64,000 nt of DNA from Piromyces finnis finn (lineage: Eukaryota; Fungi; Neocallimastigomycota): positions 169,646 to 233,645 of the forward strand of contig MCFH01000072.1 in the NCBI GenBank assembly GCA_002104945.1, read 5' to 3'. The notes beneath the pieces were generated by a model that searched no databases, was not told where the DNA came from, and worked only from the letters and a program-made list of their open reading frames with translations. Shown here in pieces: positions 28,155 through 42,215 of this stretch. The stretch's first letter is position 1; the number at the start of each line of letters is the position of its first letter. The position numbers and the translations under genes are program-made.

Positions 28155-30878
28155 TTAATTTAATTTATTAATAATTTCTTTGGCTTCTAGATAAAGTTCT
28201 CTATACCTAACAGATTTATTTCCTTTTTTTAATCTTATCCTTTTCAACTGAGCTTCATCTTTACTCCTAAGTAAAATTTCATCTTCTTCTTTAGACCATA
28301 TCCATTCCTTTAATTTAGTATCCACTATTTCATCAGAACTATGATGTTTTGTTTTTAATAATGCTTTTGTAACTGGAAGAGAGCCATTACATTGATGTAG
28401 TGATTCATATAATTCCTGTTTAGTTACATTAGTTTCTTTACATAGTAAAAGACATTGTTTTATATATATTTTTTTGTGCTGCTTCGACACTTTTGGAAGA
28501 TGAATGAAATTTCTAGAATGCTCAATATTTCTTGAAAGATAATTATCATATTCTAAGCTACTAGAAGATATAGGTATTTCAATATCTCTATTATTTGTAA
28601 AGAAATCAGAATAATTAAAATAAATGTTTTCCTCAACTGATCGTAAATATCTATTATCTTTATAATTATTTTTATAACTTTCATCTATATTATTTGCACT
28701 TATGGGTATATTTTGATTGCTATTATTATCACTATTAACAATAGCATCATCATTATTTTTATTAGTAGTAACAATAGAATTGTATATTAATGAACTTAAA
28801 TATTTTCCTGCTCCTTTATTTGGGCTTTCTTGACTAAAGAATTGATTATCATTAAAATTTATTATTGAATTTCTCAAATTACCTAAGCTATTTATTTCTC
28901 TTGTATTTATATTTAAATTATTATTATTATTATTATTATACTTATTATTATTGTTATTGTTATTGTTATTATTATTATTTGATAATGTATGTTTAGCATT
29001 TAAATCATTCAATAATTTTTCTATTTTATTAATATTTGGTCTATTTTTTGTACTTTCACTTGTTGATGCATTTGTACTTTCATTATTATTGTCATGTATA
29101 TTAGAATTATCATTAATTTTTTTATGATTATTTGTAATAATATTTCCTGCGGCAGATACAGTTGTTATGTTTTCATTACTTCTAGTTTCTTTTATTTTAG
29201 CTTCATCTCCTTGCATCTTTTTATTTTTAAGATTTTGTATGTTTTTTTTGTTAAAATAATTACTTAAATATGATTGAAGTTCTTCATCATCATCATCATC
29301 ATCTGAAGATCGGATTTCTGAGTTATTATTTATATTGCTATTTGATTTACTAATATCTTGGCCATTTATATTATCAAAAACTGGATTATTTTCATTATGA
29401 AGTTGACCATTACTTTCAGGAGAACTTTGATTATGAACTTTTTGAATAATATTATTATATTTCATATTATCCTTTTCTTTTTCTATTAATTTTTTCCTTA
29501 TTTCTCTATTATTTTCTTCATTTACAATGGAATTATTAACCAATAAACTATTATTTAAAGTATTTCTTTCATTATTTCGTTCATTATCCTTTTTATTATC
29601 ATTATTCTCTTTAATAAGATTACTTGATGAACTTGAAGAAGATAATTGGTTTTTCTGTAAAATAGTTGATTCTTCTCTCTGTGAATTTAAACTATCCTTT
29701 TCACCCTCAATATGTTTATTTGAACGTTTCTTCTTTATAAACAATCTTCTTTCTTGGATAATTTGTGGCATTATACTGTCTATCAATTTAAAAAAAATAA
29801 AATATAATTAAATTAATAAATAACACAAAACACATTATTGTTTATTATAATTTTATTAATAAAATATTAACCTTCTGATGTTTCATTATCACTACTGATA
29901 TCATTATAAAATAATTTTCTTCTATCTTTAGATTTCGATGTTTTTTTATTATTTAATTTAACATTTACTTCATCGTTAATTTCATTATCTCTAATAATGG
30001 AATCATTACTCTTTTTCTTTGAATTTTCATCTTCACTTAAACTGTAATTATTTATATTTCTATTGCTTTCCGTATCAGAGGGGAATTCCATATTTATATC
30101 ATTAATTACATCAATTCTTTCATCTATATTATTATTATTGTTGTTGTTGTTATTGTTGTTGTTACTGGAATCACTATCACTTTGTTTGCTATTGTTAATA
30201 GTATTTTCTAAACTATCTTTATTTTTATTATTTATATTTGATTCTGTTTGTTCTTTTTCATTTATATTACTTTGAACAAAACTTAATGGAATTATTCTAT
30301 TTTGTAATTCTGAGGATTTATTAATTATACTATGGTTGTTGATATTATTGGTATTATTAATATTATCATCGAAATTCTCATGATTTATATCATCACTAGG
30401 TCTTTTATTACTTTCTGGATAATATATATAAATATTAAAAAAATGATAAATATTAATCTAATTATTTTATATAACACTGTAAAAATTAAAAAATATAATT
30501 ATCTATTTATTACTTTATTTTATAATAATTTACCATTAACATTTGTGTAATTTTTATTTTTTTCATTTTTATGCTTATCACTATAATAATAAGTTGGCCA
30601 TTTTCCTGTTTCTAAAGCTGGTCCTACAACTTTTATATACCTTTCTCTCCATGACTGCCATGTATGATGAGGATACTTTTAATTCAATTTAATAAATGTT
30701 AATATTTATTCAATTTTGTAATTTAAATTTCAAAATTACTAATTATAATTAATTTAATACTTTTAATTCCATTTCTTTATATATAGCTTTTCCTTTTGGA
30801 TATAAGCAATCTTTTATATATGAAGCTAATAAATTATCATCTTCTTTCGTATATTCGGTTCTTTTATAATTATTTAAT

Positions 30879-32184: not shown

Positions 32185-32999
32185 TTATAAATTATCTTTG
32201 TAACGATTAAAACGATAGTCTCCAAGTCCTGCGCAATTTTGAGAAAAAGATGAAAACTCAGTATTATTATTAATAACCCAAACTAAATCATATCTATTTT
32301 TTGGATATTTCGGTGCTATACGGTAGTTCATTCCGAAATATATTAAAAATTTACGCATATCTTCATGGTTCCATGAAATTAAAACAGGGTCAATATCTAA
32401 TGGTAATTCACTAATATCTTTTGCAAGTGCTTTGACTTCAGATGCATGAAAATGATTATCTATAGTTAAATTTAATGCTCTAGCTAATGGTGCAACTGTC
32501 TGAATTTGACGACGAGAATCAGGAAGATTTTCATCTTCTTTTTTATGGTTAGCAGCTTTTTGAGCATATATCTTTTTTGGTGCTAAAGTCTTATTATTTT
32601 TAAACAAGTCACTTATGCACTCAGCTCTTAACCATCCTCTTTCTGATAAATCCTATATAAATATATTTTATATTAAATAAATTTTAAAATTTCAATCAAA
32701 ATTCATTTTAATATCTATAATAATTTTTGATATATCTAAAATCAAAACAAATTATTTTTTACATTTCTAAATTAACTAATTTTATTTATTATCATTTAAA
32801 TTTGAATTTAGAATCTTATAACAAGTACTAGATAATATATTAAAAAACTTACATTTCCAGATAAAGGTTTTTCAGCATGTCTTATTAATATTACTCGTCT
32901 ATTAGTGAAAAAAGTTATATTAGATTTAGAGAGGACTGTTTGAAATAAACATATTAATACTATAAAAAAAAGGAGTAAAGGAATTTTTTTAAATGGCAT
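32185..32999 (-). CDS. Secreted histidine-phosphatase (phosphoglycerate mutase-like) superfamily protein, 2 exons
   Basis: Signal peptide MPFKKIPLLLFFIVLICLFQTVLS; RHAEKP catalytic motif; DLSERGWLRAEC; SRRQIQTVAPLA; LISWNH. Confidence 0.85.
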
Positions 33000-34177
33000 T
33001 TGATTTGTTTTATTTGTCAATATAAATTAGGATTAAAATCTTTATTGATTGAAATTTTAAATATTGATTTTTGTAGTTTCTTCAATAACTGAGATTTCTA
33101 AATGATTAAGGTATAATTTTTAATTAGATTATTTTTTAATTATTGTTGCTAAAATTGTTGTTGTTTTTTATTATTAATTTAGCAAATATATAAATAAATG
33201 TTATATATAATTAATAATTAAAATTAATAATTTATTTACTCTATATAATAAATTTTATTAAAAAGAAAGAAAACAAATAATATGGTTTGATATTTGATAT
33301 ATTGTTTATTAAGTTTTTCTCTTTTTTAATTTTAGTTATTTAAATAAAAATGAAATTTATTATAGTAAATATAAAAATGAAATTTTTATTTTGTTTTTGC
33401 TTTACTTTTAATATAATGTTACTTTATTGTTTAGTTTTTATAATTGTTAATTTGAATCCATATATATTTTATATAATAATAAAATCATATTTTATATGTT
33501 TTTTTTTAATTATATTCAAATATGAAAATTTTTTTCTTCTTTTTTTATTTTGTTTTCTTTTAACAATTCGTTTCTATATTAATAGAAACGTTTATTTCAT
33601 AACTTGAAATGATGTAGTACTTTTAACTTTTTATTTTTTAAGAATATTTTTACATTTATACATATTCCAAATTAAATAAAAGTAAATTTATACAGAATAT
33701 AATATTTAAACTTTATTCAATAATAAAAATTGTGATAATTAAAAAAATAAAAAAGATAAAAAAAAATTTATACATTTTATATAATTAATAATTAACAATC
33801 TTTCGAAAATTTAAAAGTAATAATATTAATATACTTATAAAATCATGTTGTATCATGATCACTATTATCATTGAAATACGATTTTTGAAATTAAGACTTC
33901 TTTAAATTGATTTTAATATATGTTTAATAATATTTATTAAAAAATATTTCTTTGTTTAAAATTATAAATTACAATTAATATAATTATATAATTATATATT
34001 AATAATATTAACTATAAAAAAATAATATATAATATAAATGTGCTTAATTAATACATGAATAAATAAAAAGATATTTTGCATGTGTATGTGCATATATGTA
34101 TGATGCTTATTTTTTTTTTTTTTTTGTATTTTTAATATAAAATATATAAAAAATTCATTGATTCAAATTAATGGATA

Positions 34178-36192
34178 TCAATAAAATTTTAAAATAAATA
34201 TTAATACCAATGATATTACAAGCATTGCATTTGTTAACTTTAGAGAATGACTGAATATTGACTTTTATGTACATAATTATATAAATATATAAATATAGAT
34301 TGATTAATATTATATTTTTAAAAAATAAATATATATATATATATTTAGCCTACATTTGAATCATTAGTATTTCTTCTAACATAAACTTTTTTATATTGAA
34401 CTGTACAAATACATTGGTTAAATGGACAACAAGACTGAGCATCTTTTGATGATGATAAATATTTATATGACTTTATAATTATCATAATATTAAGTATTTA
34501 TTATTTTAGTATTATTAAATGTTTTTCAATAATAGACATTTATTATATTGTTTTAAATGTCCTTATAATATTTTATCATAAAAAAAAAAAAAAAAAAAAA
34601 AAATTAAATACAACTTACAGGTTCAAAATAAATATTTCTAATTTTCATCCAACTAGTATCAGAACTTCCATTACATATATCTAGACGATCATATAATTTG
34701 TCATACATAATATCTTTAAACTCTACTTCAATTGTACTCCATTCATCCTAGAGATTTTTTTTTTTTTATATTTTTGATTTATGATTATTTTTTTTTTAAT
34801 ATATATATATATTAATTCAGAAATTACTAAATATTTTTTACAAAAAAAAAAAATAATATTAAATTTATTATGTATACTTATGTATATAATAATACCTCAT
34901 TAAATACAAAATCTTGACCTTCCTCAGTTTTGTTCCAGAATGTTAATAATTTCAATTCACCTTCAATTTCCATACCAGTATATAATTTAAAATCCTGTGG
35001 AGCCTATATATATTATCAAATATATATTAGCAAATAAGTTTATTAAATATGCTAATAAATAGAAATTTGATTTTTAATTAAATTCATTATATATGATAAA
35101 TAGTAAAGATTTATATTATATTTTTTTTTCCTTCTAATACCTTTATTTCAAATCTAAAGGATGCCCATGGACCAACATAAGGGTCTTTCAAATCAATAGA
35201 CAAACATCCAGTTGGATTTACAAATTTGTACATAATATTATTTATAAATGTTGAATTTTTGAGACAATAAAAAGACCAGTCATTTCCATATAATTTCAAA
35301 TTATCCAAAACAGTTCTTGGAGTAATGTAAATTAAACGAGCCTTTCGCATGTAAAACTTTACACTGTTTTCTGGATCGGGATTACTAAAATTCTACCATT
35401 ATGTATAAATAATATTGTATGAAGATGCAAACAAGAAAATTAAAATAATGTTTTCAAAAATTTAGAATATATTCCATTTCAATTTAAAAATGATTTATTT
35501 ACAATAACTGAATATTCTCCATCCATAGTTTCAGGAAATTTAATAATATATGATGTAAAATTCTTATATTAAATGAATATATAAATAAGGATTAATTAAT
35601 TAACAATTATATTATAAATTTATATATTTATATTTAGTATTCAATGGTTTTACATAATTCTGAATTTCTTCTTCGGTAAATTCTGTTTCATCTACTGATT
35701 TTATTGTTGTATATTTATCAGAGTTTGGTTCTTCTAAATTTATATTTAATTTTCCATTCTTAATTATTTTTGAAATAAATTAGCTATTGACATTTTAAAA
35801 CTTTTATTATATTATTTATTTTCACTAAAATAGATTACCAAAACTATTAAATCAATTTCCATATCTGAATAGTATTCAAATGCTGAAAAAAAGCCAACAT
35901 CACCTGTATTATCATATGCTAATTTAATTCCTGTAGTGCATCCTGGTTTTATTTCAACCATTGCAAATTTATATTTTACTATATCATCTTCCGTTAATTC
36001 TTCTGTGTCATTTGTTGGCGGGATTGGTGAACTTCCAATATCCCATGATACACATTCACTTTCTTTTTCAATTGGAAGTCTATTTAATCTATATGTAGCA
36101 AATGCATCATATCCAAATAAACCCAAATTTGCACTTACATACTTAATTATTACACTTATAAAACTTAATAAATACAATATATTTATATCCAT
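34178..36192 (-). CDS. Secreted, probably GPI-anchored non-catalytic protein with two tandem CBM29-like beta-sandwich modules; 8 exons, about 400 aa
   Basis: Signal peptide; all eight exons join with phase-0 GT-AG introns; module 2 has GNDWSFYC...SFRFEIK...DEWSTIEVEF...YDRLDICNG...MKIRNIYF; hydrophobic C-terminus NDSNSIFSHSLKLTNAMLVISLVLIFILKFY*. The gene model is well supported; the CBM29 call is from remembered motifs. Confidence 0.6.
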
Positions 36193-40941: not shown

Positions 40942-42215
40942 TTAATAATCATCCTCATTGTCATAATCATTATCAAAATCGAGATTATCTTGGATTAAGT
41001 TTTCTTGAATATATTTATTTTCTTTAAACTTAATCCTATGATTTAATTTTATTTCAATATCATCTTCAACATCATCGTCATAGTCATCATCATCAAATGA
41101 ATAATCATTTTCATCATCATCATCATCACTTATATTATCATCTTCGTCTTCTTCTATATAATAATTATTACCAGAAACAGCATCTTCTGGATTTTTTGGT
41201 ATTTTTGGTTTGGTTGGATTAACAGCATAGAAAACATTATATTTAGGATTACATCTAGAAAAAGCATTAATACAATTTATTGGACCTTCAACTTCAAAGG
41301 TATTTTTTGCATGGAAACATAAACGTACTTCAGACATATATTGACGTTTCTCACGTTTATTATAAACACAATTAATTTCTACTTGAGTATTATTGAATGC
41401 ACTCTTAAAAGCATCTTGAAGAGTGTCAAGTGAATAACCTTCTTTATCATTGGGTACAATATCAGCTTTTTCAAGAATTGGGTATAAATCATATATAGAA
41501 CGTAATTCAACAGCTTTTTCGAAATAGGTAATGATATCATCATCCTTTTTATAGTTTGAACCAAGACATTGTGGAGTAATAGTTGAAACACATTGACCAT
41601 GTTTATTCCATTCATGAGCCCAGAACCAATTATTATCTTTAAGTTGATCTGGGTTACCACTAAGCCAAATCTTTTCCATTTCAGATAATAAATCTTCATC
41701 TTTTGTTCTTATAATTTCTTCAATGTTTTCTTCTTCTCTTTCTGGATTACAATTAGTTAGATAAGTTTTACCATCACAATTTCCTGGCCAAAGACCATGT
41801 AAAGTCCATGTATCTTTTTCAACCTTTTTTAAGGTTCCTTTTTTACATGGCTTGTTTCTTCCAGCATTTTTACAATAACTATTTAAAATTGAAAAATAGG
41901 GAAAGAATTATAGAAAATATTAATACTCAGAAATTTCTTTATTATTATTCATAATGTTTATTATAATATGTAATAAGTAATAGATATATATATATATATT
42001 TACCTAGGTAACCATTGAAGTGCAAGAACCATATGTCCTTGATCTGGAATACAACATTTATTAACTAAACCTTCATTATTAGAACATGCTACAATATCAA
42101 ATGAAGGACACTCAATCTCTTTTTTCTCTATTAAAAGAAGTTGAGAATCAAATACTCTTCCATTAGATTGAATAACAAGGTAAAGCAGAACAATTATATA
42201 AATAATACGTTTCAT
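40942..42215 (-). CDS. Secreted ribonuclease T2 with acidic C-terminal tail, 2 exons
   Basis: Signal peptide MKRIIYIIVLLYLVIQSNG; CAS I TWTLHGLWP and CAS II FWAHEWNKHGQC; fungal-type CC..P..G.MVLALQW start. Confidence 0.95.

Follow-up and report, generated by a model that had tools for sequence, protein, structure and literature searches.

The ways in which anaerobic gut fungi cling to plant particles, and perceive them, are poorly understood, attention having gone mostly to the dockerin-borne parts of the cellulosome. A gene of Piromyces finnis raises the question of whether a surface protein outside that system could take part. It lies on the minus strand at positions 34178-36192 of a 64,000-nucleotide (nt) stretch of contig MCFH01000072.1, hereafter the window (GC content ~19%; all coordinates count from its first letter), on contig C203 of the P. 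finnis assembly (56.46 Mb, 232 contigs). A first-pass annotation, made from the letters alone, had described its product as a tandem protein resembling carbohydrate-binding module (CBM) family 29, free of enzyme domains, anchored by glycosylphosphatidylinositol (GPI) and a candidate plant-fibre adhesin. We find that the gene is real and that both of its modules are predicted to adopt the CBM29 fold, and we think it likely that the product is a secreted, non-catalytic surface protein with a glycan-binding role.

The gene is built as follows:

34178-36192, minus strand: whole gene, ATG to stop, 8 exons, 402 codons
36192-35839, minus strand: exon 1, 118 codons
35758-35654, minus strand: exon 2, 35 codons
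35562-35503, minus strand: exon 3, 20 codons
35392-35141, minus strand: exon 4, 84 codons
35003-34896, minus strand: exon 5, 36 codons
34747-34619, minus strand: exon 6, 43 codons
34470-34354, minus strand: exon 7, 39 codons
34261-34178, minus strand: exon 8, 27 codons and the stop

Exon-by-exon translation places all eight exons in phase 0, and each of the seven introns runs from GT to AG over 80-148 nt and carries in-frame stops; the exons have a GC content of 0.20-0.31, the introns one of 0.09-0.17 and the sequence flanking the gene one of 0.11. The chain proposed by the first-pass annotation was reproduced exactly, and every motif quoted there is present (GNDWSFYC, SFRFEIK, DEWSTIEVEF, YDRLDICNG, MKIRNIYF, SCCPFNQCIC, FTSYIIKF, YSVINFSNP and FYMRKARLI). 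This chain, including the junction of exons 7 and 8, is already in GenBank, truncated at its 3' end and with no function assigned, as 'hypothetical protein BCR36DRAFT_416367, partial [Piromyces finnis]' (P0016, 388 residues), which is identical to exons 1-7 and the first 13 residues of exon 8; the window adds the final 14 codons and the stop, missing from the 3' end of P0016. Whole-protein analyses were done with P0016, 14 residues short of the full C-terminus, or with orthologues; exon 8 was treated separately. An environmental contig of 1,370 nt (L004) carries AT-rich untranslated flanks around a single uninterrupted orthologous open reading frame (ORF) of 394 codons that includes the hydrophobic tail; from its sequence it appears to behave like a spliced mRNA, which would make it intron-free, transcript-type support for the gene model. 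In the genome of Neocallimastix lanati, tblastn recovers all eight coding blocks of the P. finnis gene, and their boundaries fall at matching protein positions. Since P0016, the layout of the orthologues, L004 and the N. lanati blocks all agree, the exon chain is not a chance construct, and the eight-exon model is confirmed.

With exon 4 as query, HMMER run exhaustively against 1.84 billion representative proteins gave five true relatives (62-75% identity), and the full-length relative P0002 matched 10 proteins in a collection of 5.8 billion. The relatives with a source name belong to P. finnis, N. lanati and an Orpinomyces-labelled EukProt model, the others being environmental contigs of the Joint Genome Institute (JGI). 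By these searches the gene appears restricted to the anaerobic gut fungi, with some 10 proteins, and its orthologues (384-411 residues) share the layout of the P. finnis gene. The long multi-stretch matches P0006-P0013 of the exhaustive search were set aside as repeat-driven noise; P0008, P0009, P0012 and P0013 were inspected, and are repetitive proteins that match via a repeated short word such as NPRGCISLD. In the P. finnis genome, searches with three of the exons (1, 4 and 7) and with the module 2 profile revealed no paralogue and returned the gene itself only, which is single-copy; a weak match on contig C200 (E 0.1) was dismissed.

Two relatives have unusual records. The N. lanati orthologue (L039:2692-5646, JACVTC010000038.1) is annotated as two genes, of 150 and 224 residues, where tblastn shows one, and the 224-residue piece is P0020, starting at MRKARLIYI. 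P0003 (282 residues, from a JGI contig of 2,324 nt) is identical to P0017 up to '...WIKVRNI' and then continues into a different C-terminus of ~95 residues, whose final stretch (EFWVDDVSFEP) resembles a further CBM-type strand; chimeric assembly, intron retention or a genuine isoform bearing a third module could each explain it.

Along the protein, the following parts can be distinguished, and together they cover all of it:

36130-36192, minus strand: signal peptide, by inspection, residues 1-21, MDINILYLLSFISVIIKYVSA
35324-36123, minus strand: module 1, residues 24-196, made of the remainder of exon 1, exons 2-3 and the first 23 codons of exon 4, with introns 1-3 within it
34619-35323, minus strand: module 2, residues 197-336, made of the rest of exon 4 and exons 5-6, with introns 4-5 within it
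34354-34470, minus strand: exon 7 stalk, with CCxxNQC[IV]C at 34405-34431 followed by the conserved basic stretch KKVYVRR
34178-34261, minus strand: exon 8 tail, SIFSHSLKLTNAMLVISLVLIFILKFY and the stop, with a hydrophobic run of 13 residues three residues from the C-terminus

The signal-peptide cleavage context is kept in the family, between YV[SK][AT] and N[LK]G[IL]FGY, here between VSA and N, and the stalk exon is found nowhere else in the P. finnis genome. No Pfam match was obtained with any exon or with P0016, P0015, P0017, P0018, P0002, P0001, P0003 and P0005, and thus no dockerin (CBM_10, PF02013) or catalytic domain, as the first-pass annotation had stated; two classical CBM29 genes yield three dockerins apiece in the same scan. 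With regard to CBM29 itself this silence is uninformative, because Pfam has no CBM29 model and the genuine CBM29-1/CBM29-2 protein likewise gets no match there. The proposed layout of signal peptide, two modules, Cys-rich stalk and hydrophobic tail stands; stalk and tail are both conserved, and the tail is GPI-like. We read exon 8 as a probable GPI-type signal or short membrane anchor. The fungal GPI pattern reportedly set out by De Groot et al. in 2003 combines an omega-site triplet of small residues, a spacer and an uncharged tail; in its strict form it fits four of the six full-length orthologues, with triplets SGA and NSS (for example RK-SGA with a 15-residue spacer). Our literature search found no prior description of a GPI- or membrane-tethered CBM protein in anaerobic fungi.

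As a reference for the two modules, genuine CBM29 was located in P. finnis through the heptapeptide that the first-pass annotation had quoted for CBM29-2, used as a degenerate DNA pattern, which had one exact genomic match. This match (L011, C173:28274-31294) is the P. finnis orthologue of NCP1, with a signal peptide, dockerins, a Thr-rich linker, CBM29-1 and CBM29-2, the last matching PDB entry 1GWK with E = 3e-78. The CBM29-2 motifs that the first-pass annotation had quoted were essentially right, L011 and 1GWK both containing DNWGWGC, SLRFDMK, DEY.TYILD, FDRI(D/N)FQD and IWIKNLVH. P. finnis holds at least 24-35 CBM29 modules at ~9 loci (phmmer with CBM29-2; a hidden Markov model (HMM) from 12 modules gives at least 35 matches), and 12 distinct modules were aligned (alignment A4). 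In A4 the positions W26, R112 and Q116 (CBM29-2 numbering) are invariant and W24, G61 and D117 nearly so, and several of the conserved columns are ligand contacts of CBM29-2 (PMC9079177). The classical genes examined are:

contig C175: 3 CBM_10 dockerins and 6 CBM29
contig C162: GH10, 5 CBM29 and 3 dockerins
contig C157: CotH, CBM29 modules and CBM_1, with a similar gene on contig C1
contig C193: CBM29 modules and a CBM1-like module
contig C173 (NCP1): dockerins and 2 CBM29

The CotH genes carry two or three CBM29 modules, with or without CBM1, and further loci of the expansion lie on contigs C44, C180 and C152. A hydrophobic C-terminal tail is present in none of the genes examined on C175, C162, C157, C1, C193 and C173. 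The array on C44 reaches the contig end, is near-identical to the C175 modules and has in-frame TGA stops, and may thus represent a duplicate that is collapsed or degenerate. Just downstream of two CotH-CBM29 genes lie ORFs of 492 residues (L036:4550-6028) and 184 residues (L037:4661-5215) that by eye look retroelement-derived.

The relation of the gene in the window to these modules rests on structure and on profiles. A set of 48,161 representative PDB chains was used for structural comparison, and the modules were aligned without Foldseek pre-filtering. The AlphaFold2 model of P0016, built from an 11-sequence family alignment (predicted local distance difference test, pLDDT, 63), shows two domains rich in beta structure, the stalk and tail being disordered. 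Searching Foldseek with the whole model gave low template modelling (TM) scores because the orientation of the two domains differs, and the per-domain searches were decisive. Module 1 folded alone reaches a pLDDT of 77 and a predicted TM score of 0.76, and its best PDB matches are the Piromyces equi CBM29-2 (1gwk, Z 12.2) and CBM29-1 (1wcu, Z 11.1), the next chain having Z 10.0; with Foldseek, CBM29-2 chains fill all of the top 15 places. For module 2 the best match is again CBM29-2 (1gwk_A, Z 12.5, root-mean-square deviation 2.6 Å, 125 of 141 residues aligned, 16% identity), and CBM29-1 (1wcu) has Z 11.0. Identity to CBM29 in the structural alignments is 13-16%. The proposed CBM-type beta-sandwich was thus recovered in the models of both modules, with CBM29-2 as the top PDB match of each.

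Profile-profile comparison points the same way. With hhalign, the family profile of module 2 matched A4 with a probability of 85.7% (P = 5.5e-6, score 39.4) over 111 columns, almost the entire module, and that of module 1 with a probability of 41% (P = 2.8e-4, score 30.2) over 112 columns. With local settings, the real scores of 34.0 for module 2 and 29.7 for module 1 compare with 11-15 for reversed profiles, and 100 column or block shuffles gave means of 12.5-16, standard deviations of 2-3 and maxima of 24.7 and 23.9. Direct comparison of module 1 with module 2, profiles included, showed no similarity, and a tandem duplication is therefore indicated only through the likeness of each module to CBM29. 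When the A4 HMM was run against the spliced family proteins, both modules registered in every member, in the right order and register, at 6.5-20.6 bits in the family (for P0016 15.4 bits, E 8e-7 being reached at Z=1 only), whereas left-out true CBM29 modules score 143-153. The term CBM29-like therefore holds for the predicted fold and for remote homology between profiles, but not at the level of significance at which an annotation HMM operates, and by sequence the protein does not reach annotation-grade CBM29 membership. In our reading both modules would be very distant CBM29 relatives outside the reach of HMM-based annotation of carbohydrate-active enzymes (CAZymes), and by descent the protein appears to be a divergent sister of CBM29, rather than CBM29 by annotation criteria.

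The ligand site was mapped through the hhalign alignments, using the CBM29-2 contact residues of PMC9079177. Two segments of module 2 stand out:

35273-35287, minus strand: GNDWS, residues 209-213, W212 corresponding to W24 and the nearby Y215 to W26 of CBM29-2
34670-34696, minus strand: LYDRLDICN, residues 311-319, nearly invariant in the family

Position by position (CBM29-2 numbering), the two modules align as follows:

W24: module 2, W212, invariant; module 1, V48
W26: module 2, Y215 (Y/F in the family); module 1, W50, invariant
Y46: module 2, T234, variable; module 1, T86
A48: module 2, C236, invariant; module 1, G88
E78: module 2, not aligned; module 1, E127, invariant
D83: module 2, E273, variable; module 1, D132
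R112: module 2, R314, invariant; module 1, V172 (V/I)
114: module 2, D316, invariant; module 1, N174
Q116: module 2, C318, invariant; module 1, S176
D117: module 2, N319, invariant; module 1, N177
K74: module 2, no confident counterpart

The aromatic platform formed by W24, W26 and Y46 is thus represented by two of three positions in module 2 and by one of three in module 1, and of the trio W26, R112 and Q116, invariant in CBM29, each module retains only one. Conservation in module 2 is strongest in the blocks NDWS, GC.SI and LYDRLDICN. These align with the CBM29-2 contact stretches W24/W26, Y46 and R112-Q116, which suggests that a ligand site has been maintained in this module. Eight Cys are conserved, namely Cys47 and Cys85 in module 1, Cys236 and Cys318 in module 2 and four in the stalk, and the cleft of module 2 has possibly been rebuilt, perhaps around a putative C236-C318 disulfide. 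Because key CBM29 contact residues are replaced, binding to cellulose or mannan cannot be transferred from CBM29-2, and because an invariant Cys stands at Q116, the glycan specificity of module 2 probably differs from that of CBM29-2.

Several observations weigh against seeing here a GPI-anchored glycan-binding protein of CBM29 descent. No ordinary sequence search connects it with CBM29: phmmer with CBM29-2 against the P. finnis genome missed the gene, and it is not among the 35 genomic matches of the A4-based HMM. Nor, at E <= 10, was any meaningful PDB match by sequence obtained with phmmer and hmmsearch for the exons, for P0002 or for the family profiles A1 and A2, those to a homeobox, a Fab, deoxyguanosine kinase and AcrF6 being due to chance only. 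The whole-protein model is only moderate at its pLDDT of 63, and module 2 also matches CBM8 (Z 12.4), CBM15 (11.9) and CBM86 (11.7), statistically tied with CBM29-2. At the ligand site, the Q116 common to all 12 CBM29 modules gives way to Cys in module 2 and to Ser in module 1, module 1 is without R112 and W24, and the position of Y46 is variable. Finally, the P. finnis gene, P0017 and P0020 fail the strict GPI pattern, solely because a Lys stands 3-5 residues before the C-terminus (three in the P. finnis tail itself).

This last point bears on how the protein is held at the surface. The tail might be a single-pass membrane anchor with a cytoplasmic stub of 0-5 residues, or the protein might be released, no GPI being attached in either case; the Lys would fit such a tail, as would the position of the sole candidate omega triplet of the P. 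finnis protein, NDS at residue 372, far upstream, and exon 7, if unspliced, reads on to a stop at 34345 and would yield a soluble isoform ending in NVG. However, exon 8 and every one of the six full-length orthologues have a hydrophobic run of 9-17 residues, which is little for a stable transmembrane helix, with 0-5 residues behind it and no cytoplasmic domain. Moreover, one of the four orthologues that fit the strict pattern has a classic SGA directly after a dibasic RK, the transamidase subunits Gaa1 (PF04114) and Gpi16 (PF04113) are encoded in P. finnis by collinear exon series above the Pfam cut-offs, and the tail is present in transcript-type contigs and in the deposited model. An end without GPI is in our judgement rather unlikely, and GPI anchoring of the P. 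finnis protein is plausible, indeed fairly probable from the features of its sequence.

What the modules bind is a separate matter. With CBM29 ancestry kept, they might recognise glycans of the fungal wall itself (chitin or glucan), or else a partner protein, in which case the protein would serve wall organisation or cell-cell recognition and not act as a fibre adhesin. The replaced contacts would agree with this, as would the invariant Cys pairs C47/C85 and C236/C318, which lie at or beside cleft positions and may reshape the cleft, and a strict single copy set against the expanded and shuffled classical CBM29 modules looks like a housekeeping surface role. Yet the conserved blocks of module 2 coincide with the contact strands of CBM29-2, and the top structural neighbours are nearly all polysaccharide-binding modules, so that we hold this alternative to be unlikely. 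Least probable of all, and in our view very improbable, is that the likeness to CBM29 reflects a generic beta-jelly-roll without shared ancestry, for although the structural identity is low, other CBM families tie with CBM29 for module 2 and the two modules show no direct profile similarity, module 1 has CBM29 at the top with two independent aligners, the next family following at a distance, the hhalign matches of both modules are full-length, in register and more than 5 standard deviations over the shuffled or reversed controls, and CBM29 is otherwise typical of this same fungal lineage.

Under the preferred reading, a secreted surface protein with two CBM29-fold modules, the signal peptide would be cleaved and the protein secreted, and the C-terminal hydrophobic signal would most likely be exchanged for a GPI anchor, leaving the protein at the outer surface of the plasma membrane or wall with two lectin-like clefts presented. 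The cleft of module 2 would keep the W, Y/F, R and D of the CBM29 core with an invariant Cys for Q116, its specificity being probably altered. The likely task would be the binding of polysaccharide at the cell surface, for attachment to plant fibre or its sensing, independently of the dockerin and cellulosome system; a role in the attachment of zoospores or rhizoids, as the first-pass annotation proposed, is pure inference.

The closest known systems are NCP1 of P. equi, whose CBM29 modules are represented by 1GWK/1GWL/1GWM and 1WCU, and its P. finnis orthologue. They share with the present protein the organism group, a non-catalytic secreted character and tandem beta-sandwiches of ~140-170 residues, and CBM29 of NCP1 is the best structural match of both modules, with an in-register profile alignment; as in CBM29-2, module 2 has W24, an aromatic residue at W26, R112 and an acidic residue at 114. 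Unlike these proteins, that of the window has no dockerins and has instead a Cys-rich stalk and a hydrophobic C-terminal signal, and unlike the classical CBM29 genes examined, which are long open frames, its gene is single-copy with seven introns. CBEL of Phytophthora parasitica is a cell-wall lectin with two CBM1 modules, an enzyme-free surface glycoprotein implicated in adhesion to cellulosic substrates. The P. finnis protein would resemble it as an enzyme-free surface protein with two CBMs, but CBEL is from an oomycete, combines CBM1 with PAN/Apple domains in place of beta-jelly-rolls and is wall-bound without a GPI-type signal. The Bacteroides surface glycan-binding proteins (SGBPs) of the SGBP-B type (PDB 7KWB and 7K44), which occur among the Foldseek matches of the P. 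finnis models, would be similar as lipid-tethered, enzyme-free surface glycan binders with several beta-sandwiches; in contrast, they are N-terminally lipidated bacterial lipoproteins of polysaccharide utilisation loci and have no sequence relationship to the P. finnis protein. CBM8 of Dictyostelium (PDB 7T7Z) ties with CBM29 for module 2 and is lower for module 1 (Z 9.5), and it belongs to a cellulase, unlike the enzyme-free P. finnis protein. The three aromatics with which this CBM8 binds can be superposed on those of CBM29-2, the common ancestry of CBM8 and CBM29 itself being unresolved (PMC9079177).

A bolder proposal would make this gene the founding member of an unrecognised, single-copy sister family of CBM29 found throughout the Neocallimastigomycota, its product a lipid-anchored receptor for fibre attachment or sensing, independent of the cellulosome, with a cleft rebuilt around a C236-C318 disulfide that replaces Q116 and a new glycan specificity. 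With all of its parts taken together, we regard this as quite improbable.

Other ORFs of the window were noted in passing:

40942-41679, minus strand: ORF of 245 residues with a long acidic Asp/Glu-rich tail and the motif WAHEWNKHGQC, which looks like an RNase T2 active-site motif
32185-33020, minus strand: two ORFs with a signal-peptide-like start and LIRHAEKP, which look like exons of a secreted protein of the histidine phosphatase type
28155-29786, minus strand: Asn/Ser-rich low-complexity ORF of 543 residues whose end stretch, EWIWSKEEDEILL, is possibly Myb/SANT-like

The gene offers a testable candidate for how anaerobic gut fungi hold or sense plant fibre, and its modules suggest that the CBM29 fold reaches further than HMM-based CAZyme annotation detects. 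If module 2 binds, the Cys that replaces Gln in a cleft otherwise conserved would provide a natural experiment on CBM specificity. Stalk and tail could serve surface display in anaerobic fungi. Should the protein prove to be a surface receptor for plant fibre, it would represent a eukaryotic counterpart of the Bacteroides SGBPs.

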